The position numbers and the translations under genes were made by a program. DNA of 64,000 nt from the NCBI RefSeq assembly GCF_006345805.1, contig NW_021833064.1, positions 83,508 to 147,507 on the forward strand, written 5' to 3'. Below the pieces are notes generated by a model. It searched no databases and was not told the origin of the DNA. It saw nothing but the letters and a program-made list of their open reading frames with translations. Of the stretch, positions 4,564-62,900 are shown piece after piece. The stretch is from Octopus sinensis. Lineage: Eukaryota. Within the stretch, counting starts at the first letter, position 1; every line of letters starts with the position of its first letter.

Positions 4564-4611
4564 GTCATGACCTTTGAACTGGTGAACAAAATATAGTAAA
4601 TATTCTTTGCT

Positions 4612-5103
4612 ATGCACTCTGATATGAACGACATCATACGGAGGGTCCTCGACTCGGCAGGATTTCCTTCGGTTCTCGAACCACCGGGTCTTGACCGCGG
4701 TGACGGGAAACGTCTTGACGGGATGATTCTTTCCCCTTTTGAGGGCAGAAAAGGCCTCGTATGGGATGCAACCTACTGGGATACTTTTTCTGCTTCACAT
4801 TTAACTTCGTGTGTTCTGGAGGCTAAATCTGCTGCTAAGAAGGCTGAAGATTTAAAGCTATCAAAATATTCTGCCCTTTCGGAGGAGTTTTTCGTGGTGC
4901 CGATAGCGGCGGGACGTCGGGTGCTCTCGGTCCAAAGACTGAAAAGTTCCTCCGCAAGCTCGAAGCCAAAATCTCAATGCGCACTCACGATCCTCGGGAG
5001 GTGGACTGGCTATTGCAACGGTTCTCGATCGCCGTTATCCGGGGAAACATTTGGCAATTCGCCAGGCCTGCTGACCTTCCCTTCGATTAATCGATATTAT
5101 TGA
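4612..5103 (+). mobile_element. CRE-type RLE retrotransposon 3' fragment
   Basis: LEPPGLDRGDGKRLDGM...LVWDAT...K..KY...FVVPIA, the PD-(D/E)xK RLE domain; frameshifted near the end. Confidence 0.85.
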
Positions 5104-7479: not shown

Positions 7480-8700
7480 ATTAACAATCATAAAGGTCCT
7501 CACCACGAGTAACTCGGGGATAATATTTTTCAATCCAGTTAACAAATCCCATTAATTTTTGTGGTGTAAAAACCTTTTTTGTATCTATTGCAATTTTTTC
7601 CAATATTTTTAGCCTATATTCAAAAATTAGAGTGTCATCCGAAGTTTTTTTTTATAATTAAGAATTATTGACATCTTTTCTCTTAGCATTTTTTACTTCT
7701 GCTTTAAAAGTACTCCAGGCTAATTCAATCGGGTTTAATAAGTACAATTATTTATTTACCCCCGGCCCCTTCAATTGAAAGAAACCGATGACTAACAAGA
7801 ACGAAATTGTCAATGTCGGACTCTCCCAAAGATCCCCGATCGCGATCCGGTGTTTTGAAGAAACAGAAGGTGGGCCTGGACACGAGAAAAGATCACTGAG
7901 AGAGTGGGAATGCGTGGATTCGGCAAGGCCTATTCTTCGACGATAATTGCGTAGTCCAATATGATAGCCACAGCGGAGACGGGGCAAGTTCACTCGGGCT
8001 TCTCTCGAGAGGGAGGATTCGTTGTTGTTTATTGGTGGCGGAATGCGTCCCAGAAGCTTGTTTATTCCAAGACATCTGATTGCCTTCGTAGCTACCAAGT
8101 CGTGAATTCTCTTCTGGTTATTGTCCGGAGGAAAGGAAATGTTTTGGTGGCGAGGCAATAATTATGTCATCAGCGTAGGAGAGAAGTAGAGTATTATTGT
8201 TCGTCGGGATACTGGACAGATGTAAGTTAAATAAGGCAGGTGAAAGAACCGAGCCTTGGGGAACCCCGTTAGACAAGTATTTGTAATAAGTACAAATATG
8301 GGGCCAATCGTAAAAGTTCAACATTTTCTTTTTGGTCGGCAGGTTTTGAGAAAAATTAATTCCCCATCAAGCCAATTTTTTACTGTTGTAACAGACACAG
8401 AGATTGAATAATTATTTCGTATTTTCTCCGCACATTCTTTCAAAGTGATCTGATGATCAGTTTCAATCCAACTGATTAATTCATTTATACTAATTTGATT
8501 TTTTTAAATGTCTTTTACCTCCACTTGGATGTCTTTCTTTAGCTTCATTTTCAATCCAATGATAAGCTGTTCTCAAATTCACTCCAAGAGAAGAACATAG
8601 AGACTGCCAATCGCCAAAATTTTCATGTGGTTCAATTATTCTTTTTTTTGTATCATCACTGTACTTGCGATATCTTGTTTTTTCAGTCATCAAACAATTT
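7480..8700 (-). mobile_element. IS630/Tc1-like transposase split by a LINE insertion
   Basis: HTH-like N-terminus (KYSDDTKKRII...LGVNLRTAYHW) at 8490-8693 and C-terminus LNPIELAWSTFK... at 7480-7745, on either side of the LINE at 7748-8330. Confidence 0.7.
7748..8330 (-). mobile_element. 5'-truncated, internally deleted copy of the Ingi/Vingi-like LINE
   Basis: GVPQGSVLSP and YADD RT motifs; 3' end CAATTGAAGGGGCCGGGGGTAAATAAATAA shared with the element at 52364-55648. Confidence 0.9.
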
Positions 8701-14183: not shown

Positions 14184-15727
14184 ATGTTGTCTTGTGACTC
14201 GAGTTATCTCGCTCTGATATTGGCAGCAATCAGTGTGTTATTTTACTATATAACCAAACGTCATTCTGACGGAAAAGTAGTTATAATTTGATTATTTATA
14301 GTTAAATTATCCACCAATGGTCAAAAGGGGTCTTCCATTCTTTGGAGTCGCCTTTGAGTTTGGAAAAGACCCCGTCAAGTTCCTCCTGTCTTGCTACGAG
14401 GAGGTATGTGGTCAGAATATTCCAAGTATGGGCCTGTCGTGACCTTCACAATGATGGGCAAGCAGTTCACCTACTTGCTGGGCAGTGAAGCAGCAGAACT
14501 GTTCTTCAACAGCAAAAATGATGTCCTCAACGCGGAGGAAGCCTATTCCAAGTTGACGACACCCGTTTTCGGTCCCCGAGTAGTCTACGACATCCCCAAC
14601 CACGTATTCTGATCTCCTAAATAATAGATATTCCTCCAACAAAAAAAAATTGGAAAAAGTGGACTCAATTCTGACCGATTCCGCACATTTGTCCCCAAAA
14701 TCGAGGATGAGACTGCCCAATTCTTCGCCAAATGGACAAAGACAGGCGTGGCTGACTTGTTCAAGGAATTGTCCTCTCTGATCATATTCACTGCCTCCCG
14801 TTGTCTGCTGGGGGATGAATTGAGGGAAGTCATGGACGAGTCGGTCGCTGGACTTCTCTCTGATTTGGATCAGGGGTTTAGGCCGGAGGTGTGGTTACTC
14901 CCCCAGTGGTTCCCTCTCCCTGTCAAAAAGTATGGAATATTGACGATTGTAGAGTCCGGGACCGTGCCCACCAGAAGATAAAATCTTTATTTTCTCAACA
15001 AGTTAGAAAAAGACGGGAAAGTGGTATAAGGCGAGAAGATTTGATGCAAACTTTTATTGATACTCCTTACACGGATGGGCGGAAGATGGACGATGGCGAA
15101 GTGGTGGGATTGCTGATTGGAATGTTGTTGGGAGGGCAGCACACGTCCTCCACGACTTCTTCATGGCTGGGTCTGTACATCGCGAGGGATGAGGCACTGC
15201 AGGAGGCATTGTATGAGGAACAGATGAGTGTGCGGGGAGGGGACCCAATCACGTACGACCATTTGGAGGAAATGGATTTATTGGACAGATGTTTGAGGGA
15301 AACACTGCGACTGAGGGCTCCCCTTATTACTACTATGCGGGTGTGCAAGGTTCCTGTTCAGGTGTTGGGATATGACATCCCCGTGGACACTCACGTGTGT
15401 ATTAGTGCCAGTGTCAACCACCGCCTTAAGAATGTGTGGCACAATGTAGACAACTTTGACCCAGATCGGTTGTTTGTTGGTTTTTATGATAGTTTCCTTG
15501 AGTACGATGTGAGTAAGATTGGACGCTATTCGTATATTCCATTTGGACAGGGCAGACACCGCTGCATTGGCGAGTCCTTTGCCTACGTCCAGATCAAGAC
15601 CATTTGGGCACATCTCATTCAGAAATTTCGTTTCAGCCTTCCGGGGGGTCGTTTTCCTGATGTTGACTTGACTACGATGATTCAAGCCCCCAAACATCCA
15701 ATCATCAACTACACCCTGAGAAACTAG
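14184..15727 (+). CDS. CYP51: Sterol 14-alpha-demethylase, apparently intact
   Basis: [17 protein letters not shown]-helix [20 protein letters not shown] and heme motif [10 protein letters not shown]; frame stays open after removing introns 14277-14301, 14404-14426, 14604-14627 and a further 23-nt intron near 14932. Confidence 0.96.
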
Positions 15728-17944: not shown

Positions 17945-19624
17945 CAGTCCGACCTCTAATTGGGGCGCACCTCCAGGGGTGGGGCACCTCTTTTTTGGGG
18001 AAAACTCTGTTTTGGGGCATTATAAATTTTTTTAACCAAATTATAAAAAATCAATTAATTTTAACATCTCTATTTGGGGCATTGATTTTTTATTAAATAA
18101 AATTAATTATACCAATTTAAAAAATAAATATTTTAAGACACGTTTCATTTCAAATTTCTTGTGTAATGCCTTTGAATTATGAAACCAAGTTGAAGATTGC
18201 TGATCATCTTTTAAAAAAAGAACATTCTGAGAGGAGATTATCCATAATGTACAATACTAGCAAGGGAACTATTTTTCGTATAAAAAAGAATATTCTTCCA
18301 TTTATCAAAAAAGGATTTCTTTCCTCATCATTAAGTGAAAATAAAAACGGATTTGATGAAAAAGTCCTTGATATTTTTCAGCGTCTAAGGGATCAGAATG
18401 TTCCAGTTTCTGGAACTCTTTTAAAAAAAATTTCCCTAACTGTTTCTTCGAGAATGGGTTTAAACAAGTTTAAAGCTCCAAATGGATGGTTAGAAAAATT
18501 CAAGCAGAGGCATGAATTAAAATTCCGAACATTGTCAGGCGAATCCGCATCTGCTGATCATGCGATAATTTTGAATTTTTTATCAGAATTAAATATCAAA
18601 GTTGAACAATATGAAAAGGAGAACATTTTTAATTGTGACGAAACTTCTCTTTTTATCAAACTTACCCCACGTAAATCATTCGTGAAAACTGGTGATTCGG
18701 CACGGGGCTTTAAAAGGAGTAAAGATAAAGTTACTCTTCATCTATGCTGTAGTTACACTGGAAAAAAATTTGAACCATTAATAATCGGAAAATATAGAAA
18801 TCCTAGATGTTTCAAAAAATTTTCTCCCGAAATTTATGGAATTTTATACTCTTCGTCCAAAAATGCGTGGATGACAAGAGACATTTTTATATCCTGGCTC
18901 AAAAAAATTAATGAAAAAATGATTATTCAAAAAAGAAAAATCTTAATGTTATTAGATAACGCTGCTTGCCACAAAATATCGACATTTAGCAACGTTGATT
19001 TTTTATTTTTACCAAAAAATACGACACCAATACTTCAACCATTGGATGCTGGAATCATTAAAAATTTCAAGGATAATTATTTGAATTGTCTAATTGATTT
19101 TTTATGTTTTCAAGACGACCAGGATTTGTTTATAGAGTCTTTATTTAAATTAAATTTGCGGCAAGTGGTAACAATAATCTCAGATGCTTGGAATAATGTA
19201 TCTGCGGATATTATTTATAACTGCTGGCAAAAGGTTTTTCGACAACCTCCATCAGACTCGAGTTGCATAAATGAATCATCTGAAGAAATATTTAATAATG
19301 TTATTGATGAATGTTTTGACGAAATAGAAGATAATGATCCAAATATCTATGAGAATATAAGCTGCGAACCATCAATATCACAAATTTTAAGTTTGATGGA
19401 GACAAACATCTTTGATTTGATTCCAGATTCTCTTCATGATTTTTATAAATTCAGAAAGAAAGTGTTGTTAGGAATTAAAAATAAATATAAATATGGAGAA
19501 AAATTAACTGATTATTTTAAAAAATAATGTTCTTTTTCTTTATTTATTGAGCTTTTTGAAAAACCTCTTTTTTGGGGAAACCTCTGATTTGAGGCACTTA
19601 GTGCCCCATTTAGAGGTCGGACTG
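17945..19624 (+). mobile_element. Intact pogo/Tigger transposon (453-aa ORF 18166-19527)
   Basis: TIRs CAGTCCGACCTCTAA / TTAGAGGTCGGACTG, TA on both sides; CENP-B HTH (GWLEKFKQRH), NCDET, LLDNAACH and QPLDAG (DD29D spacing by my count). Confidence 0.95.
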
Positions 19625-24699: not shown

Positions 24700-26501
24700 C
24701 AGTAGACTATCCATTTAACGAAAAAAAATTTAACGAAAATATTCATTTTACGAAAGTCAAAATATTTTTTTACGTTTTTCCTTAGATAAATTCAAAAATA
24801 AAATTTTTTTTCTTTGTATTAGTGAATATTTAAATATATTTAACGAATATTTAAATAACGAAAATTAAAATTTTTGATAAAATTTTAAAATAATTTTTCC
24901 TCGCTATTTCTTGTAGTAAACCATGTTTGCAAGGGTGAACAATATGAAAAAAAAAGAAAACTTATCAATTCAACAAAAACTGGAAGTTATTGATTTCAAG
25001 AAGAATAATCCTGCTGTTACTCAAGAAAATTTGGCTCAGCGGTTTAATATACCTATTGGAGTGATCAATTCAACGTTGAAGAAAATGCAATTGTATGGAT
25101 CAAGGCGTCACAAACAAAAAAAGAATATTACATTTAAAAGTTGTACTGATAAGATATATGAACCACTATATGCATGGATTCAGATCAAACGTTTCTGTAA
25201 TCACACCATAACTAATGAAATGGTACGCGAAATGGCACTCAAAATTGCTCAACGATTTTATAATGAAAATTTCAAAGCATCTCACCCATGGATTTCACGC
25301 TTTAAGGAAGAGTATAAAATAAAAACACTCACGATTTCTGGAGAAGAACAATTAGTGGATCCCGTTTTGCTTATAGATTCATATGAACGCTTTGCAGCCA
25401 TGTTAAAAAATATGGATCGAAAAATGTTTACAACTGGGATGAAACTGCCTTTTTTTCAAATGTACTCCAAAAAAAACATTAGTTCTTGACTCCGAATCAA
25501 GGGCTTCAGGAAAATTTTCTAAAGAACGAATAACACTGTTATTATGCACAAATATGGAAGGAGATAAAGAGCATCCGTTGGTAATCGGAAAATTCAAAAA
25601 TCCTCATGGTTTTAAAAATATTAATATGAATAATCTTGGGATTCAATATGCAAATAGTAATAAATCTTGGATGACCAGTTTAATTTTTAAAAACTGGGTT
25701 GAACGGTTAAATTCCAAAATGAGTGTGGAAAATAGAAAGATTTTGCTTCTTTTAGATAATGCGCCAGTTCACTATTTTGATGGCGAATTCAGTAATATCG
25801 AATTGTATTTTCTTCCTCTAAAGACAACATCTAAGATTCAACCAATTGATCAAGGGATTGTGCATTCATTTAATCGTTGTATAAAAAAGGAATGACTAGA
25901 AATTTGAGTATGGGAACAAATATAGGAACATTGTCATATACAGATGAACTTACCAAATTCAAATTAGTGAATGCTCTACCTTTAATTATTGAAACTTGGA
26001 ACGAAGTCACAGTGGACACTATCAAAAATTGCTTTAACACAAGGCATTAAATAATTGGGCGAAGATAGATGAAAAAATACTTGAAGAATCCACTGACGAA
26101 AAAGGTATTAAATTTAAATCACCTTACAATTAAAGATAATAAAAGTGAAATTATGATTGAGTTTCCTGTCTGTGCACCTGTCGTCTGCGAAGAAAACGCG
26201 TATCTTGATACAATACAATGTGAGGAAGAAAATGAGCATGAAGAAATAGATAGCACAAATGACAATCCCATTGGTTATGCAGATGCACTTAAATATTTGG
26301 AAAATATTGAAAAATATTTTTTGCAAGAATCTGGTGAACATATTCACCTAATTACAAATTTGAGAAATATATTGGCAAAAATTAAAAAGAAGGAACCTAA
26401 AATTACCGATTACATGACACATTTTTAATTAAACAATTTTTTTCGTTAAATTCATTTAACGAATGCTCAATTTTCATTTTCGTTAAATGAATAGTCTACT
26501 G
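24700..26501 (+). mobile_element. pogo/Tigger transposon, copy B (near-identical to A)
   Basis: Same TIRs and TA flanks; ORF pieces 24923-25489, 25554-25895 and 26069-26428. Confidence 0.95.
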
Positions 26502-42559: not shown

Positions 42560-44760
42560 TTTTATTTTTATTTATTTATTATGACCAAAAACACCGTCAT
42601 AACCATAATTAACTATTTCAGGTGATCCCAGCCTCTTTTAGAAACCTTCGCATCTTTTCTCTGTGTTCTACAGCGCATTGCCTAAGAGGTCGGCGATCCC
42701 GAACATGGACTTTTTTCCTGAGGTCTCCACCGTTTTCTTTCACGATTTATTCTAATCCCTTTGGTTGAATTTTGTTCTCCGTGACATTCGGTAGGAGGTT
42801 TACAATCTCCATTTGAATATTGTCGATTTTTTGACATTTGTATATGCTAGATTGCATCCCCATACTGTACATTCGTAACCAATTGTCAATTTAATGTATT
42901 GGGTGTATAGAGATTCTAATCTGTAAGTTCCTTTGGCGTTTTCCAATTTTTCAAGAAATGCTTTAAGAAAGTTTAGTTTCTTATTGCATTTCGTCAACAC
43001 GTTTTCCGTATGGGGAGTAAGGGTTAGAAAGGTGTCAAAGGTGATTCCTAGTATCTTTAGAGTTTTATTTTGAGGAATTGATTTCCTTCCATGGTCACAT
43101 TTATCGACAAATTCCCAGTCTTTTGTTAGTTGTGAAAAAGGTTAGCTCAGACCTTTCCGGCCATACACACAGGTTATTTATATTTTTCTGTAATCTTCTT
43201 GTTGCTTCACTGACAAATATATACCTCGATGCAACTATTATATCATCCGCATATGATAGTAAAATGTCATTCTTGTTTTCAGGAAGAAGCATATCGTTCA
43301 ACATTAGGTTGAATAATACGGGGGATAGGGGGAACCTTGTGGCACTCCATTCAGTAGTAGCATCGATGTAGATCTTCGATTGCCCTTGTAGACTCTACCC
43401 CGACGTCCATTCAGAAAATTGGCGAGCCATAGTTTTAAATATGGTAACCATATTCAACAAGTAAATTTTCTGCTTTCTTGAGCAGAATCATTGGTATTCC
43501 GTCTGGACCACAGGAAATTGTATTCATTGTGTGTTGGATTACCAATATGACTTGATCAGGTAGAAAAGGGGTTGATAGCTGTCCCTTTTTTGGTTTTCGT
43601 AAAGAATTTGGTGGCCTATTGTGTTTCTGATATGGTTTGTAGCTGATTGAGACACAGTGGTTCATAAATTTGTTTAAATTTAGTGATTCACCAGGTTCAC
43701 ACTTGTCTGTGCATCATAGTCCCGAAATTTACGTAGCATCTTCCACAGATAGTGGACTATTCCTTTTCATAGCTGATGATATCCTCCCCAGCTTCTGCTT
43801 TTTTCTGTTTACCTTACTCCGGATCGCCTTATTCAGTGTCCTTATTCTCTTGTTGTTTTTTTGGTTAGAAATTTTTTTGCGCTTAGGAAGATTCTTTCTT
43901 TATCAGTCTGATAATTTCTGGGTTTTATTTTCTTTCTGATATTTTTCGGAAACGTTTTTGGACATATAATTTCCTTCCACGAATATCACTTTATTGAGGT
44001 ATTTGGCTGCCCTATCGAGGGAGTTGGGTTCCGGATAGAATGTGGAAAGTTTTCGTATCGACAAAAGGTTAAGTCTGGAGATGTGATCATTCTTTTCCGT
44101 TATATGACTTCCTATATTTTTCTTCGATCTGTTCACATTCCTCTTGAATTGGAAAATAAGTGGATGTGTTTCCTCCGCCGGTTATTTCTGAAACCACAGA
44201 GGGTGCTTGGAATAAAATCTCCAGAAAGCAGTAAGTTGGTCCAAATTATCAAGGCTAGACAGATCGACAGTAAATCCTTTGGCGCATGACCCCGGTGGGG
44301 AATATATAAGTTTCCAATAGTAATAATTCCATTGGAGGTATGAATAGTAAGCCCCATGACTTCAGAGTTAGCATCTGGGTCAGTTTTGTAAAGATTGCAT
44401 GAGTTTTTGTGAATGTAATTCCCTTCCTGACAAAGTCATTAAGCCCCCACCTCGACCCGTGGGTCGATCCTGTTTTTCAACGTTATAACCATGGAATCTT
44501 GGAGTGTTGGCCATTACGGATGACTTCGTTTCTTGTAGCAGGCAAATATCGATATTCTTTCTTTCCATGTACATATTGAAGTCTTTTTTTTTCCTGACGC
44601 CATTTATGTTTAAGCTCATAACGTTCAAGAATTCTTTGGTCCATGATTTTGTTCAACATCTCCAGACAGTAGCAACAAAAAGAAGGCTTCAATTTTGCAA
44701 GAGTGCTGTCCAGAGAGAGGTTTTCTTGATGGTTGGTGACTATTGGTTTTTTTGATTAAT
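42560..44760 (-). mobile_element. Internally deleted APE-RT LINE with 2A-like motif, copy A
   Basis: LLLSGDVEQNHGP, NVMSLNINGVRKK...LLQET (APE), LLSYADDII (RT), (TAAA)n tail near 42565. Confidence 0.85.
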
Positions 44761-46864: not shown

Positions 46865-48136
46865 TGGTGGGATGATCCAATCTAGATACAACTTTTTTTA
46901 CCTGGCTCTTTTGTTTTGTAGAATATGGTCAGTGATTATCCCGTTAATACTTGATAATCTGGAGCCCGAGTTGGAGTCCCGGACGCCATTCCTCTTTATT
47001 GCACGTCTCTCTTTTATGAGGTCAATGATCTCCTTTGTAAAAAGTGGTTTTGCCCCACGGATGAATCCTTTGGGAATGTGTTTTCGGTCTGCAGAGATTA
47101 TGCAATTGCTGAAGTGTTTTATTGCGTAATCGATCGATTTAAAATTTAGGACTGAGAAGTTTGAGAGATACTGGAATTTCGACCACAGACCGTGTTTGTA
47201 GTGAAAAATATCCTTTTGGTTATAGAACTTTAGAAGTATTTTTTGATCTCCAAAAGTACGGGGTTGTGGTCAGAAGGAAGGTCGTAAGCAACCGACCAGA
47301 ATGTCCGAAAGCCAGTTCGCAAGGCAGTAACGTGTGGCTGGTGTGGGTCGTTTAGGGCAACAAGGTGGTCGAGCTCCGCGGAGACATACTCCCCCCGTTG
47401 ATCTAGTTTCCCTTCACCAAACCATAATGAATTTTTGGCATTGAAGTTTCCACACACAATTGTGTTCTTTAATGGCAAGATCCAGGAGAGGTCTGGAATG
47501 TAGCCCTTCGAACAACTTGTAGGATGAGGAATATACAGGTTGACGATTGTGTAGGCAACATTATTGATTGTTATTAGTACTGTGAGGAACTCCAAGTGGG
47601 CGTCGGGGGGAAATGTGGAACGTATGGAATTGGTAGTGTTAGTGAAGGGAATGTTTCACGGATGAAAGTGATGAAACCTCCTCCATTCAGTCCGTTAGGG
47701 CGGTCCATATGGACAGTTGAAAATCCCTTGAATCGAGGGGTAGGACGTGTCGATATCAGGCGGGTTTCCTGTATTAAGGCAATGTCCACATCATGAGAGG
47801 GTAAGAATTCCATTATCTCATCTTGTTTACAAGAGATCCCATTAATGTTTATTTGTAGAATGATGAGGCAGTTCGAAGGTCCCGGATTGGGTTCAAAATC
47901 CCTGGAGAGGGAAAGTGACTCATGGAAGAGGCTGAGCCCCACTTCGAGGACAGCCAGAAGATCCAAGGGATCCAATGGGGAGAGTATAGAGGGTCTTTTA
48001 GTCGCCGTGAGAAACACAGCGTCCAGGGGCCTCCGGTGGGCATTATGGACTTATGGAAGCGCCCACCACTCGCTTCTGAGCCCCTGAGGACAGCCGGCCT
48101 CCTACAAGCTAGAGAGGTCGGGTAACTAACTAACTA
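46865..48136. mobile_element. Composite LINE: minus-strand 2A-like+APE 5' part abutting a plus-strand LINE 3' end
   Basis: Minus: RDFEPNPGP, ILQININGI, ALIQET, DLPSDHNP. Plus, 47995-48136: DLWKRP.LA... and a (TAAC)n tail. Confidence 0.75.
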
Positions 48137-50439: not shown

Positions 50440-51312
50440 GTCCGAGAGGTTCTACTCCCCTTCAACGAACTCTCTCTGGAGTTGCCGACTGCCGACCTCC
50501 TGGAATTCTGGACTGACGCTAAACTACCCCTCCCGTCCGACATGTCCGTGCAACGGGAATGGGATGAAATATGGGCAGCACACTCGTTCTCCACGCTTCA
50601 ACCGGCCTTGGACCAACACCGCCAAGCCTGCCTGCTTTCTGCAGCACACGAGCATAGTGGATCCTGGCTCGACGCTTACCCAACGTCATCGACGGGTTCC
50701 CTATTAGACAACGAAACACTACGTATCGGGGTCGCTCTTCGGCTGGGGCTCGATGTCTGCGCCCCTCATCCCTGTCGATGCGGAGGTACGGTCGACGTGA
50801 AAGGCCTTTACCCCCTCTCCTGCCGCCGGAGCGCAGGCCGCTCGCCTCGCCATGGAGCAATCAACAACGTAATCTCAAGAGCTCTCAACGCTGCTGGCTT
50901 CCCCAACGTGCTTGAACCAACCGGATTGGACAGAGGGGACGGCAAACGCCCGGACGGGATGACCACCTTCCCATTCCGGAATGGCAATTGCCTGATCTGG
51001 GACGCCACGTGCGCAGACACGTGGTCCCCATCCGCTCTACTGTCATCTGCTTCTTCTTCCGGCTCGGTCGCGGCCCTGGCGGAAGCCCGCAAAGTAGAAA
51101 AATACAAGAATCTTGCCACTCGACATTCCTTCGTGCCTGTGGCTTTTGAGACATCAGGCGCTTCCGGTCCGCTGACCTCATGCTTCTTAAAAGACCTCGG
51201 TATCCTCATCGCTCGGAAGAAGATGGATGCTCGCGAGTCCTCTTGGTTGAGGCAGAGAATCTCGCTCGCAATCGTGCGCGGGAACGCGCAAGCAATCCGT
51301 TCGGCTGGATAA
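50440..51312 (+). mobile_element. Longest CRE-type fragment (open 276-aa C-terminus)
   Basis: SGSWL...LRIGVALRLG, zinc knuckle CRCG....SC...RH, RLE KRPDG...IWDAT...FVPVAFETSG...QRISLAIVRGN. Confidence 0.92.
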
Positions 51313-52363
51313 TTTAGTTATAAATTATTATGTTTTATTGACAAAATTGTTGGTATGTTAAAAAAAAATAATAAATACGTGTTTTGCGTTCTGCGGATGA
51401 TAAATACTACTTTGAAATGAAAACTTGTTTGTATCAATTTCTCATTGAAAATTTAAACAAGAAGTGCCCTTATCTTTTGTGGATTTGGATGTCGAATTCG
51501 TTTCGCATTACCAATCCAACTGAACTACCAAGAATGTGAAAGACAACCCTAAGATGACGGTTGACTCGGAAAGTCTAATTACTTCATTTTAAATTTGTAG
51601 TTTTTTTTAAAGAAGTGATTTTTCTAATTTAAAAATGATTATTCTAATTGGAAAACCTCTAAAAGTAATAAAAAATTTAAGGTTAGTTTGGTTTTGTTCT
51701 GTCTAATTTTTCACAAGTCACGAAAATCATTAAAAATACCTTTAAAATAAGACTTAGAAAAAATTAAGACATATTTTATATGGATAGAATTGATTAAAAT
51801 GAGCACCTCGTGGGAACATTAGTTAAATTATCATGCTATACTTGTCACCCGTTTATTCATTATTTTTAAACAAATAAGTCAATTACAATTATTCAAATTT
51901 CATAGCAACACTCATAGTATAGTACTGAAATAAAGGATCCTCATCTTTCTAGACACATTTGTGGAAGCCTACCCTATTTTTAATGAGGATACCTCTAGTC
52001 AGCTAGGTAATGCGGTTAAAGTACAATCTGATAACTCTCATGACCTGTTGGCACATCATAGCATTCAAATGTGTCAGTAAAGAATGTGTGCACAGTCGTA
52101 GAGCTATCACGACTTTACGTGTAGCCTCTGTATGTGCATTACATATTCGTTTTAATTAAAACACTATTTTAAACGAAGCACAACAAAGTATAAAAATATG
52201 ACTCGTTAGATTTAATTAAATAATACATTTTTCAAAACAAGAAAAATTAAGCTGTCAATTAATTAATCTTCTTACGCTTATATTCTTTCCACTTTGCCAC
52301 CATTTCGTATTTATTTATCTCATAGAATGTCATTTCGTATTTATTTATCTCATAATGTCACCT

Positions 52364-52434
52364 GATCGTCATGTGGTTCACCTTCTCGTGGAGACGATTG
52401 GATGCTGATTTCACATCAGCAACAAACAGAACCA
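52364..52434 (+). ncRNA. Candidate HDV-like self-cleaving ribozyme at the LINE 5' end
   Basis: P1 52364-70/52393-99 (7 bp, G1.U wobble); P2 52374-79/52429-34; P3 52380-82/52390-92 (one mismatch); L3 UUCUCGU; P1.1 GG 52400-01; P4 52403-09/52415-21; candidate catalytic C52423. Folded by eye. Confidence 0.7.
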
Positions 52435-55400
52435 ACTTTTCCCCCTTGCCAACCAACCTGTCAACGGTTTGGTTGGTAGTGGCTACGGGACGAGCGCCAA
52501 GCTTACGTTCCCTGACTCTATTGTTGATTCGGTGTGGAGATGTGGAACAAAACCCTGGACCTGAGCCTATTAGAACACTAACCATCCTTCAATTGAACAT
52601 CAACGGGATTTCCAAGAAATGCAATGACCTACGCTACTTTCTACACACGAACTCTATTGATATAGCCTTATTCAAGAGACCAAACTTACTCCAAAATCCC
52701 AAACCCCCCGTTTTAAGGATATTCCACCATTCGTCGTGACCGCCAGTCTGGAAAGCCTGGCGGTGGTCTCATTACTCTCATTCACGAGGCCATTCCCTTT
52801 GCAGACTCAACTGCCAACATTGAATCTCTCTTAACTAATGATCGATTTACCGAAATTTCATCTATTCAAATTAACATTAACAAGATATGTTACTCTGTTG
52901 TTAACACATATATCCCCCCGATTTCGTCATGTGCTCCCAATTATACACCGAACTTACTGCCTCTTTTTTCAATTGAAAACTGTATTCTATGTGGCGACTT
53001 CAACGCCCACCATCCTCTCTGGTTATCCACAAACAAAACTGACAAACGTGGCCAGCAAATCACAACGGATGCGGAAGAATTGATCACTCTAAACAACCCT
53101 CTTCTACACACCCGCTGTGCAATGCGACCTGGAGATTCAAACACTTCTCCTGACATTACCTTTTGTTCCCCAAACATCGCCCTCGACGCCAAATGGACAG
53201 TTCTGTACGACCTACCAACGGACCACAATCCTATCCTAATCAAAATAAACCATCACCCTGTAAAGAAGAGAATTACGAAGACCTACATTAACTACAAACG
53301 TGGGAAATGGGACTCGTTCAGGAGTGAAACAGAACGTATATTCAGTAATTTTTCTTGCTCCTCCATTCAATCATTTGACGCTGCCGTTGCTTTCTTTACT
53401 AGTACACTTCTTTCTGCGGACAAAAAATTTATTCCCCGCGGCTTCATCCGAAATCACGGCCTCCATTTCCCCCCACCTATCATTGAACTATTCAAAAAAC
53501 GAAGGGGGATCAAATCGACGACTTCTATCAATGGAATGGAGAATCTCTAGCAGAAATCAACAAACAAATTGACGAATTAATCAAGAAACATAAAACTGAC
53601 GAATGGAATGATTTTATCACTTCAATAACCCCAAATACTGGATCCCGTGCTTTCTGGAGAACCCTCAAGAAAATTCACACGAGGCAAACATGTCCCCTCT
53701 CACATGCCACCGGTATCTCGACCAAAAATCTGTCCTATCTTTCCAGGATCAAGCCAACATCTTAATTCGCCATTATGCAAAAATCAGTCACCTTCCTACC
53801 CCAAAGGATCTCCGTTTCGTAAGAAAATCACATTATAAGTCAAATGACAATTCTACTGACTATATTAACATCCCAGAATCACTTACCAGGCAACTTGTTG
53901 TTAACTCGCGGAATTCTAACGCCAGAGGTCCTGATGGCCTTGCCATCCACCACCTAAAAAATCTGGGTCCTAATGGCTTTCTGGCTCTGACCAATTTAAT
54001 CGAATACTCGATCAACCATGGTCTGGTTCCTATGCTTTGGAAGAAATCTACCATCATCCCTATCCCAAAGCCAAATCGTGATACCTCTGACCCCTCCTCT
54101 TTTCGACCTATCTCTTTGATCTCAGTGGTTTCAAAAATAACAGAGCGAGTTGTATTGAGCATCATAAAACCTTTCCTCCCATTTGCTGAATCTCAACATG
54201 GCTTTCGTTCTTTGCATTCCACTTCCACCCATCTTTCAAAACTGACACAATTCATTGCGGATGGGTTTAACAATCATAAGCCACCTCAAAGAACAATTAT
54301 TGCATCCATCGACATTGAAAAGGCATTTGACAGAACGTCAAGACACGTTCTGTGTAGGAAAATAACCGATACGGAATTCCCCCACCAAATAAAGTCATGG
54401 CTACTCTCTTTTCTCTCTGGGCGTCTTGGTCGCACCACAATCATGTCTTCTTACTCACGCTACAAATACTTGCCTAACGGAGTTCCCCAAGGCTCGGTCC
54501 TTTCACCTGCCTTATTTAACTTACATCTGTCAAATATCCCGACGAACAATATACTCTACTTCTCTCCTATGCTGATGACTTAATTTTTGCCTCCCGCCAC
54601 CAAATAATAATCACCGCTTCTGGATTTCTGCAGGAACACATGAACACTCTTTCGTCCTGGCTGAAATGCAATCTTCTTCAACCTTCTCCTTCCAAATCAT
54701 CTGTTACGCTATTCACAACTGACCGCCGTCAGTTCAACTTAGAGCCTAAACTATTCCTAGACAACACCCACTCCCAGTTGAAAAATCCCCCAAATCTTGG
54801 GTCTGATATTTGATTGCTGTTTGTCCTTCTCGAAACATGTTTCATATATCTGTGGAAAATCCCAGAAAAAACTCAATGTGCTCCGAGCTATTGCGGGGAC
54901 TTCATTTGGGCAGGATAAGGAAAGTCTAACAACTGTATACAAGCATTTATTAGAACAACTATGAACTACTACGCCATCCCTGCTTGGGGTTCCTGCTTAT
55001 CTATTACAAACCTTGAAAAACTTCAGAGAACTCAAAACTCAGCATTACGAATTATTACCGGCTGTCTAAAAACGACACCTACCGACCACCTACATTGGGA
55101 ATCGAAAATCCTTCCAATCAGTGACCATTTTGAAATGCTCGGGCTGCATTTCTTGACAAATGCCGAACCCTAAATCACCCTGGCTACTTCCTCTGGCACT
55201 CCACTAACAACAGGAGAATAGTTCCGACCCTCGCGGACAAAGTCCGCAAGCTTATACGATCCCCTCCGGACATTAACCAGAAGGGGATTCACGACCTGGT
55301 GGCTACGAGGGCAATCAGATGTCTTGGAATAACAAGCTTCTGGGACGCCTTCCGCCGCCAATTAATAAGATCGAATCCTCCCTCTCAAGAGAAGCCCGAG

Positions 55401-55648
55401 TGAACTTGGCTCGTCTCCGCTGTGGCACCATACTGGCCTACACGATTATCGCATAAAAATCGGTCTTGGTGAAATAACCCCTTCCTATTCCCTCAACGAC
55501 CTTTTCTCCTGTCCAGGCCCGCCTTCTACTTCCTCGGAACACCGGATCACGATCGGGGATCTTTGGGAGCGTCCGACATTGGCCCTAACGTTCTTGTTAG
55601 CCACCGCTTCCTTCAATTGAAGGGGCCGGGGGTAAATAAATAAATAAA
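52364..55648 (+). mobile_element. Full-length Ingi/Vingi-like LINE (leader-2A-APE-RT, no RNase H), a few frameshifts
   Basis: TSD AATGTCACCT (52354-63; 55650-59); GDVEQNPGP; LQLNING, DFNAHH and TDHNP (APE); FRPISL, DIEKAFD, GVPQGSVLSP and YADD (RT); (TAAA)n tail. Confidence 0.92.
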
Positions 55649-56817
55649 GAATGTCACCTTTCATTCAATAGATCACGGCGTTCAATGGACTGATTACTTT
55701 TTATGAAATAGATAAAGATCAAATTATTTTAAGAAAAAAATTATTATACATTACGGCATTGTTATAATGAAGCTTTATTTGCATGAAATACAACAAATTA
55801 ATGATTCTCTATCTTTTAAAAATATTGATAAGAAAAAAAGATACAGATTGAAAATATCTCGAATCTGATTCAGTTTCAAAACGGAAAAACTTACATCCTC
55901 CAGGAAGATACTGAACTTTGCGGTCGAAGAATATGAGCTAAAGCTAAACATATTTAGGTTACCTATTGTTAAACATTGTCAGTCAGAACATAATATGGAT
56001 CACTTTAAACGAGATCGTCTATTCGACAAGCTTCTTAATCAAAATGTTTATTTTGTCAGAGAGTTTTCTATCTATATTTGTTAGTTAAAAATATTGCTAG
56101 AGAGTCGAAAATCATTAAAAATACTTTTAAAATAACGCTTAGAAAAAATTAAGACAGACATTTTCTTTGATTATAACTCTAGCTTTCACGAAACAACTAA
56201 AAAAATCGTAACCGAGGAAAATGGAGGAGACTCGTTACTAGTTTGGATGTTGCAGAGGTGGGACTATAATTATTATGGTTCTACAATAAGTGCGTTTATA
56301 ACAATTCTGAATTTCAATAGTCAGTAAGGTCATTTTAGACGAAAATGTCTCCAATGCATTCAAATTTTGATTTTTTTGGTTAACAAAAAACTTAAATCCT
56401 GTATATTACTCAGACCATCCAAAAGGTAGGTTGCGGCGCTGGAGATCCCTTTCAATGCCATTATTAGAATATCTAATTTATATATATTATGTCTGAATGT
56501 TTACCTTGTAGTTTCTTTCAAAAGGGTTGGGTCGAGAATCATCAAGAAACTTGCGAAAATGGACAAAAATAGCTTTAATTTGATTAGATTTAGTTTTGGC
56601 AAAATTTTATGACGACAGAATTAGAAAATCGACACTAAACAGTGCAAGAACTGTGCCCAGGTGGGTTTTTTTGTTCGGTTCACAAGATTTCACCACTCTT
56701 AAACACTTTGTAAGTCGTCAAAAAAATTAAAGTACGTTTTATCTGTACGTGGCCTGTTTTATCCAGGTATTATTATTTAATCTGTTTATTAATAAATATT
56801 TAAATTAATTCAAATCG

Positions 56818-58659: not shown

Positions 58660-59545
58660 ATGTCTAACCTCTTTTTGGGGCACCTAGTGCCCCAAAAAAC
58701 AGGGGTTTCTTCAGATAGAGGGGTTTTCTAATATTAACGAAAAAAACTAACGTTTTGTTAATTTAAAACCAAAAGATGTTTATTCTTAATTTCATTTAAC
58801 AATTTTAGTCTTTACTTGTCGGGAAATGATCCGTTATTTTCGTTCCGAATTTGTACTTTTGAATTAATCGATCCATTGTCAACTTCTTAAAATTATAAAA
58901 TTTATTTAATATCTCTGAAGCATGCTGAAAAATGCCATCTTCCATTGCATTAATTGAAAAAATTAGTTCCTTGATAGATTGACATTTTATAACTCCGTCA
59001 TATAATGCGTTGTCATTTTCTATACCAGAGATTTCTACTGATATAACTTCTTTGACAGTTTCTTCGATTTTTTCTCCATTTATTTGATCAGATTTTTTCA
59101 CATCATGTGTACGTTGCTCATTAATTTTATTCCAACAATTTGTAATCGTTTCTTTAGTAACATTCATCCAAGCATCTTCAATTGCTAGCAAAACATTTCT
59201 CATATTTATATGTGATAGGCCTTAAAAGATTTATTTATCTACAGTGAATACCATTTAATATTAATTCTTCGCCTTCAAAAAAACATATGAATTTAACCAG
59301 TTCATGTGAGTAACATGTTTTGAATGAGCGAATTATTCCCATGTCAAGCGGTTGAAGCCGCGGAGTAGTATTTTTAGGCAAATATAAAAAATTTATATTG
59401 GAATAATCATCTGCTTTATGGCATCCTGCATTATCCAAAATTAATAAAATATGTCTGTTATTCTCTTTCATTTGTTCATTTATCACATATAACCATGCAT
59501 TAAAAATATAACTTGTCATCCAAACATTTTTTGAAGACATACAGT
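58660..59545 (-). mobile_element. 5'-truncated pogo/Tigger related to 17945-19624
   Basis: LDNAGCH, QPLDMG, KITDHF; subterminal CCTCTTTTTGGGGCACCTAGTGCCCC. Confidence 0.85.
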
Positions 59546-60159: not shown

Positions 60160-61554
60160 TTTTTATTTATTTATTATGACCAAAAACACCGTCATAACCA
60201 TAATTAACTATTTCAGGTGATCCCAGCCTCTTTTAGAAACCTTCGCATCTTTTCTCTGTGTTCTACAGCGCATTGCCTAAGAGGTCGGCGATCCCGAACA
60301 TGGACTTTTTTCCTGAGGTCTCCACCGTTTTCTTTAACGATTTATTCTAATCCCTTTGGTTGAATTTTGTTCTCCGTGACATTCGGTAGGAGGTTTACAA
60401 TCTCCATTTGAATATTGTCGATTTTTTGACATTTGTATATGCTAGATTGCATCCCCATACTGTACATTCGTAACCAATTGTCAATTTAATGTATTGAGTG
60501 TATAGAGATTCTAATCTGTAAGTTCCTTTGGCGTTTTCCAATTTTCCAAGAAATGCTTTAAGAAAGTTTAGTTTCTTATTGCATTTCGTCAACACGTTTT
60601 CCGTATGGGGAGTAAGGGTTAGAGAGGTGTCAAAGGTGATTCCTAGTATCTTTAGAGTTTCATTTTGAGGAATTGATTTCCCTTCCATGGTCACATTTAT
60701 CGACAAATTCCCAGTCTTTTGTTAGTTGTGAAAAAGATTAGCTCAGACCTTTCCGGCCATACACACAGGTTATTTATATTTTTCTGTAATCTTCTTGTTG
60801 CTTCACTGACAAATATATACCTCGATGCAACTATTATATCATCCGCATATGATAGTAAAATGTCATTCTTGTTTTCAGGAAAAAGCATATCGTTCAACAT
60901 TAGGTTGAATAATACGGGGGATAGGGGGAACCTTGTGGCACTCCATTCAGTAGTAGCCTCGATGCAGATCTTCGATTGCCCTTGTAGATTCTACCCCGAC
61001 GTCCATTCAGAAAATTGGCGAGCCATAGTTTTAAATATGGTAACCATATTCAACGAGTAAATTTTCTGCTTTCTTGAGCAGAATCATTGGTACTCCGTCT
61101 GGACCACAGGAAATTGTATTCATTGTGTGTTGGATTACCAATGTGACTTGATCAGGTAGAAAAGGGGTTGATAGCTGTCCCTTTTTTGGTTTTCGTAAAG
61201 AATTTGGTGGCTTATTGTGTTTCTGATATGGTTTGTAGCTGATTAAACACAGTGCTTCATAAATTTGTTTAAATTTAGTGATTCACCAGGTTCACACTTG
61301 TCTGTGCATCATAGTCCCGAAATTTACGTAGCATCTTCCACAGATAGTGGACTATTCCTTTTCATAGCTGATGATATCCTCCCCAGCTTCTGCTTTTTTG
61401 ACTGTCTACTCCGGATCGCCTTATTCAGTGTCCTTATTCTCTTTGTTGTTTTTTCGGTTAGAAATTTTTTTGCGCTTAAGGAAGATTCTTTTCTTTATCA
61501 GTCTGATAATTTCTGGGTTTTATTTTCTTTCTATATTTTGGAAACGTTTTTGGA

Positions 61555-61601
<47 letters not shown>

Positions 61602-62900
61602 TTTTTTTTTTTTTTTTTTTTTATTGTAATTAACAAATAGTTATTAACTAACTAAATTCCCGGCATCGTAAATGGAAACACAGTTTCCACGTACTATGGC
61701 CAAGGAAATCCTTTCGAAAAGCCACTTGGACTCGCGTGGGTCTCCCCGTTTATGGGAGATCATGCGGCCAAGCTTTTTTAGAAAGGAAGAGACTTTTCGC
61801 CGATGACGCCGGAAGTCTCGACGGCGATGGGAGTGAACAGATACCGTTCAGAGAGCTCCTTGTACTTTCCATCTTCATCTTCTCGGTTTTTGCGAGAGAC
61901 TGAGCCAGGCTCGACAGCTGAAGAAGGAAGGTTGAGCTCCGAGAAAGTGTCTGAACACGTCGTCTGCATCCCATACAGAGACTTGCGAACTCAAACGGGA
62001 AAGTCGATAGGCCGTCGGTCTTTTTCCGTCTCCCCTCGCAAGCCCGACGGGTTCGAGGATTGATGGGATCCCAGCGGCCGATAAAATAGGAAATTATATT
62101 TTTGGACATATAATTTCCTTCCCACGAATATCACTTTATTGAGGTATTTGGCTGCCCTATCGAGGGAGTTGGGTTCCGGATAGAATGTGGAAAGTTTCGT
62201 ATCGAACAAAAGGTTAAGTCTGGAGATGTGATCGATTCTTTTCCGTTATATGACGTCCTTATATTTTTCTTTCGATCGTTCACAGTCTCTTGAATTGGAA
62301 AATAATGAGTTTTCCTCCGCCGGTTATTTCTGAAACCACAGAGGGTGCTTGGCATTAAAATCTCCAGAAAGCAGTAAGTTGTCCACATTATCAAGGCTAG
62401 ACAGATCGACAGTAAATCCTTTGGCGCATGACCCCGGTGGGGGAATATATAAGTTTCCAATAGTAATAATTCCATTGGAGGTATGAATAGTAAGCCCCAT
62501 GACTTCAGAGTTAGCATCTTGGGTCAGTTTTGTAAAGATTGCATGAGTTTTTGTGAATGTAATTCCCTTCCTGACAAAAGTCATTAAGCCCCCACCTCAA
62601 CCCGTGGGTCGATCCTGTTTTTCAACGTTATAACCATGGAATCTTGGAGTGTTGGCCATTACGGATGACTTCGTTTCTTGTAGCAGGCAAATATCGATAT
62701 TCTTTCTCTCCATGTACATATTGAGGTCTTTTTTTTTCCTCTGACGCCATTTATGTTTAAGCTCATAACGTTCAAGAATTCCTTTGGTCCAGGATTTTGT
62801 TCAACATCTCCAGACAGTAGCAACAAAAAAAAGGCTTCAATTTTGCAAGAGTGCTGTCCAGAGAGAGGTTTTCTTGATGGTTGGTGACTATTGGTTTTTT
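60160..62900 (-). mobile_element. APE-RT LINE remnant, copy B, with an intact 2A motif
   Basis: LLSGDVEQNPGPKEFLNVMS at about 62760-62820. Confidence 0.85.
61558..62098 (-). mobile_element. Recent 5'-truncated CRE-type insertion with poly(A) and TSD
   Basis: ~65-nt T tract; TTTTTGGACAT duplicated at 61547-57 and 62099-109; empty site visible near 43955-43970. Confidence 0.92.

Follow-up and report, generated by a model that had tools for sequence, protein, structure and literature searches.

A probable HDV-like ribozyme at the first base of a 2A-bearing LINE in Octopus sinensis DNA

Within a stretch of 64,000 nucleotides (nt) from Octopus sinensis (NCBI RefSeq assembly GCF_006345805.1, contig NW_021833064.1, positions 83,508 to 147,507 of the forward strand), hereafter the window, lies a decayed long interspersed nuclear element (LINE) whose first 71 nt probably represent a weakened copy of a self-cleaving ribozyme of the hepatitis delta virus (HDV) type, judging from their sequence and from related loci. 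Downstream of this fold, the element's single open reading frame (ORF) runs through a short leader into a 2A (StopGo) peptide and from there into an APE endonuclease and a reverse transcriptase (RT). It is considered likely that a ribozyme occupies the extreme 5′ end of this LINE and that it acted in an active progenitor in the manner proposed below. An earlier, sequence-only reading of the window had described a double pseudoknot in HDV order beginning at G52364, and every part that it listed was recovered in its place. Positions are counted from the first letter of the window.

Fold at the first base of the insertion

The 5′ end of the element is fixed by a target-site duplication (TSD). The same 10-mer, AATGTCACCT, stands on both sides of the insertion, and because its upstream copy directly abuts G52364, this base is the first of the inserted cDNA, as the sequence-only reading had held. 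With G52364 taken as nt 1 of the ribozyme, the limits of the element and the parts of the fold are as follows.

52354-52363 (+): 5′ copy of the TSD, AATGTCACCT, identical to the 10-mer at 55650-55659
52364-55649 (+): LINE insertion, 3,286 bp, bounded by the TSD; a single decayed ORF (leader, 2A, APE, RT) and a (TAAA)4 3′ tail
55650-55659 (+): 3′ copy of the TSD, AATGTCACCT, directly after the 3′ tail
52364-52434 (+): HDV-like ribozyme fold, 71 nt, supported by a descriptor, covariance models and six relatives; predicted cleavage directly 5′ of G52364
52364-52370 with 52393-52399 (+): P1, GATCGTC with GACGATT, 7 bp, the first pair being G1.U36
52371-52373 (+): J1/2, ATG, the sole in-frame start upstream of the 2A
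52374-52379 with 52429-52434 (+): P2, TGGTTC with GAACCA, a pseudoknot of 6 Watson-Crick pairs
52380-52382 with 52390-52392 (+): P3, ACC with GGA, two C-G pairs and an A.A (2/3 paired)
52383-52389 (+): L3, TTCTCGT, 7 nt, with G52388 as the conserved G
52400-52401 (+): J1/4, GG, which can pair with U21 (through G52401) and C22 (through G52400) of L3 to give P1.1
52403-52421 (+): P4 hairpin, TGCTGAT-TTCAC-ATCAGCA, 7 bp (52403-52409 with 52415-52421) and a 5-nt loop
52422-52428 (+): J4/2, ACAAACA, with candidate catalytic C52423 followed by AAA

These parts follow one another as P1-P2-P3-L3-P3′-P1′-J1/4-P4-J4/2-P2′, a nested double pseudoknot with a 7-bp P1 starting at the predicted cleavage site. 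Two further traits of HDV ribozymes are present: a cytosine of J4/2 followed by purines (C52423-AAA, for which a role as general acid is putative), and an L3 of about 7 nt with a conserved G, together with P1.1; the importance of the L3 G has been reported for R2 ribozymes (PMC3774820). The P4 hairpin appears in both the minimum-free-energy and the centroid folds. When both strands of the window were searched with a strict descriptor, no looser than the candidate itself, a single match was obtained, at 52364, and 0 matches were found in 40 dinucleotide-preserving shuffles, again on both strands. A loose descriptor returned about 11 matches in this AT-rich window, and dozens of meaningless ones near other LINE copies, so the strictness of the descriptor matters.

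Related loci and comparative support

A protein database search returned only distant relatives of the element, several of them with an N-terminal 2A. The APE and RT parts match database proteins at 53% identity or less, with nothing closer, and the names of the homologues are generic ("jockey", "BS", "X-element") and do not lead to a clade assignment. Metagenomes were scanned with a three-sequence endonuclease alignment, an eight-protein APE alignment being too divergent, and this gave 27 loci, cited here by L numbers. Among the 5′ ends of these environmental LINEs, a core CC-TTCNCGT-GG is carried by L004, L022 and L023, and a variant of it by L012. A covariance model of P1 and P3 built from these four cores, with the window excluded (R1), matched the 64-kb window once, at 52364-52401 (+) (16.8 bits, E 0.029), and turned up two further relatives, L019 and L032. 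A second model built from all six relatives, again without the window (R2), also gave one match, at 52364-52401 (+) (15.7 bits, E 0.04). A unique model match that falls on the very base fixed by the TSD is hard to explain by chance.

The double pseudoknot, with conserved L3 and J4/2, is also found in L004, L012, L019, L022, L023 and L032. The core shared by these six relatives consists of P3, an L3 of the form T-N-C/A-N-C/T-G-N and P3′, and the downstream layout is complete in each of them, comprising the P4 hairpin, C-(A/G)AA and a Watson-Crick complement of 6-8 bp to the bases 5′ of P3; at the J4/2 position, C-AAA, C-GAA or C-AAU is read. The sequences of P1 and P2 differ entirely between loci and are nevertheless paired, from which it follows that the loci are not copies of one recent family. 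Covariation among genomic copies of the element had been suggested as a check, and no second full-length copy of the family was found; the homologues behind the compensatory changes counted here belong to other LINE families, and across them covariation was seen at 6/7 positions of P1 and 6/6 of P2. In P1.1 of L032, a C-G pair is replaced by A-U.

Alignments of the ribozymes with MAFFT misplaced the gaps of P1, and model-guided alignments and alignments of equal-length excerpts were used instead. In the excerpt alignment, 96.8% of cells are paired and both sides have changed in 14 of 18 pairs, counts that lean toward structure because P2, P4 and J4/2 of the relatives were assigned by eye. These counts were reached by 0 of 500 shuffles, and slid controls paired at 32-48%. 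In all six scored sequences, the 5′ strand of P2 has a perfect Watson-Crick complement of 6 nt downstream, with C-(A/G)A(A/T) standing 1-2 nt or less ahead of it, the shuffle frequency per sequence being 0.03-0.15; in L032, a P2 of 8 bp was read by eye. L023 matches two Rfam models over their full length and exactly where it had been folded by hand, in both cases below threshold (HDV_ribozyme, 26.6 bits where the gathering score is 50; HDV-F-prausnitzii, 22.6 bits where it is 44). Relative to the frame of the 2A, the codon phase of the conserved core differs between the window element, L023 and L032, so the constraint acts on the RNA and not on the peptide.

Other loci of the same set gave less. 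L001 (E = 2) and L020 (E = 4.8) were weak candidates only in the model search; L030 can be folded by hand but requires a 22-nt insert between P2 and P3, and it was kept out of the counts. No ribozyme was found in the related loci L002, L008, L031, L033 and L034.

A microsatellite directly precedes the first base of the ribozyme in three loci, (CAA)n in L023 (430-445) and in L030 (about 765-796), and (TA)n in L004 (1-38). This arrangement points to insertion into microsatellites or to head-to-tail arrays in tandem, and in either setting a 5′ ribozyme would be useful for excising unit-length RNA.

Leader, start codon and 2A peptide

The sequence-only reading had also placed the start codon of a 63-residue leader inside the ribozyme and a 2A at the end of that leader, in frame with the endonuclease, and both are confirmed in the sequence.

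52371-52559 (+): leader ORF, 63 codons (MWFTFSW...NPG), of which the first 21 or so are ribozyme sequence
52518-52562 (+): 2A/StopGo motif, LLLIRCGDVEQNPG followed across the skip site by P, fitting the signature GD(V/I)ExNPGP

The signature is used as quoted in PMC3708506. The canonical GDVEQNPGP occupies 52536-52562; the leader ends at 52559, the proline codon is 52560-52562 and the N-terminus of the endonuclease comes next. The stretch upstream of the motif, SLRSLTLLLIRC, is leucine-rich and resembles the 2A contexts of the relatives; ribosome skipping is predicted from the motif. No domain was recognizable in the leader with Pfam.

Among the relatives, the 2A is canonical in L004, L012 and L023 and deviant (GNVHFNPGP) in L032. 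Counted from nt 1 of the ribozyme, it follows 187-300 nt downstream in the window element, L012, L023, L032 and L004, and its frame is open from the ribozyme onward in the window element, L023, L032 and L004; L012 has stop codons inside the ribozyme. The AUG stands in J1/2 in the window element and in L012, where it is out of the 2A frame, and in P4 in L032; the open frame of L004 and L023 holds no AUG within the ribozyme.

Six-frame translation of the window gave NPGP at three sites and one decayed NHGP, all directly upstream of LINE endonuclease N-termini. Apart from the element described here, LINEs with a 2A directly before APE run from about 48110 to 46937 (-), from 62829 to 62044 (-) and from 44681 to 44061 (-), with the motifs RDFEPNPGP at 47900, SGDVEQNPGP at 62808 and the decayed SGDVEQNHGP at 44660, respectively. 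The LINEs at 62.8 and 44.7 kb are near-identical, as is their flank over about 350 bp, and thereby indicate a segmental duplication with copies about 18.1 kb apart. No ribozyme was found by descriptor or model at the LINEs at about 48.1, 62.8 and 44.7 kb (-).

Proposed mechanism

In R2, RTE, Baggins and L1Tc elements, 5′ ends are processed by HDV-like ribozymes, to which a supporting role in cap-independent translation is also ascribed (PMC6765202). By analogy with R2, RTE and L1Tc, it is plausible that self-cleavage, initiation on uncapped RNA and release by 2A operated in succession in the window element. An active progenitor would have been transcribed within a longer transcript, and the double pseudoknot would have cut this RNA just 5′ of G1, leaving an uncapped RNA with a 5′-OH. 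Target-primed reverse transcription could then have copied the cut RNA to its very end, which would explain why the TSD, as observed, abuts G1. Translation would have begun at or near the ribozyme in an unconventional way: the sole in-frame AUG is nt 8-10, in J1/2, and the ribozyme sequence is therefore also read as the start of the 63-residue leader. This AUG is near the RNA's 5′ end and inside a pseudoknot, so ordinary scanning looks unlikely. Finally, the 2A (GDVEQNPG/P) would free the endonuclease-RT protein from the leader by ribosome skipping, as its motif suggests.

Strength of the interpretation and alternatives

Several results weigh against a ribozyme at this site or against its tie to the 2A. 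Models of the HDV type in Rfam did not match the window at the gathering score, nor the segment 52300-52520 at E<=10; of the model searches, a kind of check suggested by the sequence-only reading, those with models built from relatives gave a match. The Rfam models in question (RF00094, RF02682 and others) are narrow and cannot encode a pseudoknot; for this reason, and because L023 itself reaches only about half the gathering score, their silence is not taken as decisive. The nested-only folding energy of the 5′ end is ordinary (z = -1.05), which is expected for a pseudoknot yet adds nothing in its favor. The E-values of R1 and R2 are about 0.03-0.04, on a rough calibration, and the assignment by eye noted above tells in the same direction. 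Full-length copies of the family other than this one are absent from the window, which holds only the 3′ fragment at 8291 to 7745 (-). The window copy also departs from a regular fold by its A.A in P3 and its 7-nt J4/2, for which the sequence-only reading had allowed an impaired copy or a variant fold. The first departure stands, and is most simply decay of this copy, because relatives pair at that position (A-U in L023 and L032, G.U in L012, L019 and L022, G-C in L004); a P3 mismatch is tolerated in one active R2 ribozyme (PMC3774820). A J4/2 of 7 nt is also present in L019 and L022 (ACCAAAT), which makes it a family trait, not damage. As to the tie with the 2A, the position of the AUG is not conserved among relatives, a ribozyme occurs without 2A in L019 and L022, and a 2A occurs without detectable ribozyme in L002, L008, L020, L033, L034 and two other LINEs of the window. 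The coupling of ribozyme and 2A is not universal.

Taken at their strongest, the Rfam silence, the ordinary folding energy and the matches of the loose descriptor would suggest that short complementary stretches came together by chance at the start of an ordinary LINE. Such an origin is very improbable, given that the strict descriptor is silent in shuffles, that independently built models match solely this site and at its exact first base, that the fold is conserved across families with compensatory changes, and that L023 matches the Rfam HDV models, if below threshold. A fold that is real and conserved could also have a main job other than self-cleavage, as a protein-binding pseudoknot, one resembling an internal ribosome entry site (IRES), or an internal promoter acting at the DNA level as in Pr77 of L1Tc. 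In R2, the pseudoknot of the ribozyme is bound by the R2 protein, and a role like that of an IRES has been suggested (PMC6765202). Moreover, a CGTG lies in the L3/P3′ core, at 52387-52390 (+24 to +27) in the window element and at +23 to +28 among its relatives (L004, L022, L023, L032), nearly the same place as the CGTG core of the downstream promoter element (DPE) of Pr77, at +25 to +28 (PMC5814959). This coincidence could be due to ribozyme constraints or to a shared dual function. Against a fold without cleavage as its main job, the whole catalytic arrangement recurs in the relatives, with C-(A/G)AA in J4/2, the G of L3, a P1.1 and a P1 that starts at the first base of the element, the start of the insertion coincides exactly with the predicted cleavage site, and in known cases such other functions add to cleavage rather than replace it; we regard this explanation as improbable.

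More weight is due to the possibility that ribozyme and 2A are both real but independent modules, in which case AUG 52371 would not be needed and the 2A would serve dosage control or the release of an ORF1-like remnant. The loci that have one module and lack the other fit this possibility, as do L004 and L023, whose 2A frame is open through the ribozyme with no AUG there. Most retrotransposon 2A-like peptides are reported to lower protein abundance (2026 preprint, PMC13405545), and a link of the 2A to the loss of ORF1 was proposed by Odon et al. (PMC3708506). On the other hand, the sole in-frame AUG before the 2A of the window element is inside the ribozyme, the 2A stands 187-300 nt from ribozyme nt 1 in the window element, L004, L012, L023 and L032, with an open frame except in L012, and the leader has no recognizable domain. 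Independence of the modules is accordingly considered somewhat unlikely, and the sequence of self-cleavage, initiation in the ribozyme and release by 2A is preferred for the window element. A broader reading, held only tentatively and thought doubtful, is that a ribozyme followed by an N-terminal 2A is an ancient module that recurs at the 5′ end of single-ORF LINEs of the APE type, common to L1Tc/ingi and to microsatellite-tailed LINEs of marine animals. If so, translation must start within the ribozyme or directly behind it, on uncapped 5′-OH RNA, the 2A would exist to discard a peptide unavoidably encoded by the ribozyme sequence, and the N-terminal 2A of animal LINEs would gain a concrete purpose. 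The core CGTG might, by analogy with the claim for Pr77, additionally be a DPE-like internal promoter element.

Coding domains, decay and second copy

The rest of the insertion comprises two protein domains and the 3′ tail.

52587-53240, approximate (+): APE endonuclease domain (Pfam PF03372 and PF14529; frames from tblastn), frameshifted
54062-54740, approximate (+): reverse transcriptase domain RVT_1 (Pfam PF00078), with a frameshift near 54.55 kb
55633-55648 (+): 3′ tail (TAAA)4, the same tail type as on the second copy of the family

Exo_endo_phos, Exo_endo_phos_2 and RVT_1 were identified by Pfam on a frame-joined translation. The element has APE and RT in one sense ORF, a TSD and a 3′ repeat tail, and with these it is an APE-type LINE; its 3′ terminus reads ...GGGGCCGGGGG(TAAA)4 G. 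An RNase H domain was not detected by Pfam in the part scanned, which falls short of the 3′ end by about 600 nt, and the length of 3.3 kb leaves little space for one. Homologous coding segments of 52364-55649 are separated by at least five frame jumps in tblastn, and the copy is therefore dead; it is a fossil and, being dead, without consequence for the host at this locus. The second copy of the same family, from 8291 to 7745 (-), is 5′-truncated, carries an internal deletion, is 84-92% identical and ends in the same GGGGCCGGGGG(TAAA)n. Judging from it, the family is moderately old and multi-copy.

The 5′ flank of the insertion contains a 30-nt tandem duplication (52301-52359), in which CATTTCGTATTTATTTATCTCATA(G)AATGT is present twice. 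The first of these two flank copies retains the G of the 3′ junction (AAAG directly followed by AATGTCACCT), so the insertion target was probably ...CTCATAGAATGTCACCTTTCATTC. The duplication may have arisen from microhomology when the 5′ junction was formed, or later. Farther out, a direct repeat of about 51-60 nt with 94% identity flanks the LINE, at 51721-51782 (640 bp upstream) and 56106-56167 (457 bp downstream), probably as a small dispersed repeat that has nothing to do with the insertion.

Other features of the window

An uninterrupted ORF of 278 codons at 14891-15727 (+) encodes the C-terminal two-thirds of a P450 resembling CYP51 (sterol 14-demethylase). It is at best about 51% identical to animal CYP51 in the database, molluscs included, and could represent either a retrocopy that has diverged or a paralogue specific to the lineage. 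The sequence-only reading had spoken of an animal element, which is reasonable in view of the assembly (GCA_006345805.1, contig VCDQ01010919.1) and of this CYP51-like gene, whose best matches are animal CYP51. Transposase ORFs of the Pogo/Tigger type (CENP-B/DDE) are located at 18166-19527 (+), 24923-25489 (+) and 58805-59540 (-), one of them intact (453 aa) and the others fragments. A different retroelement family is represented by its C-terminal region, which is Cys-rich with ...CRCGG...H and ...GFPxVLEPxGLDRGDGKR..., at about 4600-4700 (+) and at 50482-51312 (+), the latter 1 kb upstream of the LINE at 52364-55649 and on the same strand. A T-rich tract at 61550-61625 (+), about 70 nt of T with few interruptions, adjoins LINE-derived sequence of the minus strand.

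Significance

The HDV-like ribozymes that head LINEs and the 2A peptides at their N-termini have so far been the subject of separate literatures. The two are united within about 200-300 nt in the window element and in no fewer than four of the environmental relatives (L004, L012, L023, L032), and this proximity suggests a testable reason for the N-terminal 2A of single-ORF LINEs, namely the removal of a leader dictated by RNA catalysis. Ribozyme-processed LINEs would also extend to a group with microsatellite tails, and the small structural alignment assembled here can be used to find more such ribozymes.

Comparison with known systems

Each part of the arrangement is already known. The same double pseudoknot occurs at the 5′ end of R2 (also R4, R6 and SART), Baggins and RTE elements of animals (Eickbush & Eickbush 2010; Ruminski et al. 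2011), where the cleavage site sets the 5′ junction (PMC3774820). Apart from the catalytic C and a small number of L3 bases, few positions are invariant in these animal 5′ ribozymes of the HDV type, and some active members tolerate mismatches in P1 and P3 (PMC3774820). R2 differs in being site-specific, with a restriction-like endonuclease and no 2A, whereas the window element is of APE type, has a microsatellite tail and carries its ribozyme inside the ORF that leads to the 2A.

The protein side is closest to the 2A-bearing LINEs of the CR1, L2, Rex1 and Crack groups (Odon et al. 2013), in which GD(V/I)ExNPGP is N-terminal in ORF2, immediately before APE, and ORF1 is absent (PMC3708506). The hosts of these single-ORF elements are marine invertebrates, including molluscs (PMC3708506). 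No ribozyme is mentioned in the literature on animal 2A LINEs that was searched (e.g. PMC3708506, PMC13405545); the LINE group described here may nevertheless have been reported earlier as ribozyme-bearing, for example among the LINE examples of Ruminski 2011.

The combination of ribozyme and 2A is itself known in trypanosome L1Tc, a precedent that the sequence-only reading cited correctly (PMC5814959). Elements of the L1Tc/ingi type are APE-type, single-ORF LINEs whose first 77 nt or so form an HDV-like ribozyme cutting at +1, L1TcRz in the Pr77 region (PMC5814959; PMC6765202), and they share with the window element an N-terminal 2A before the endonuclease, TSDs and a CGTG at about +25. Here, however, the host is an animal as judged from the assembly, the tail is (TAAA)n instead of poly(A), and the element is 3.3 kb long, with RNase H not detected in the part scanned. 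With the Pr77 hallmark sequence, a poly(A) tail and an RNase H domain after RT as marks of the L1Tc/ingi clade, the window element is not assigned to that clade but is likened to it in the way it would work, as a LINE that starts with its own ribozyme and sheds the resulting leader through a 2A.

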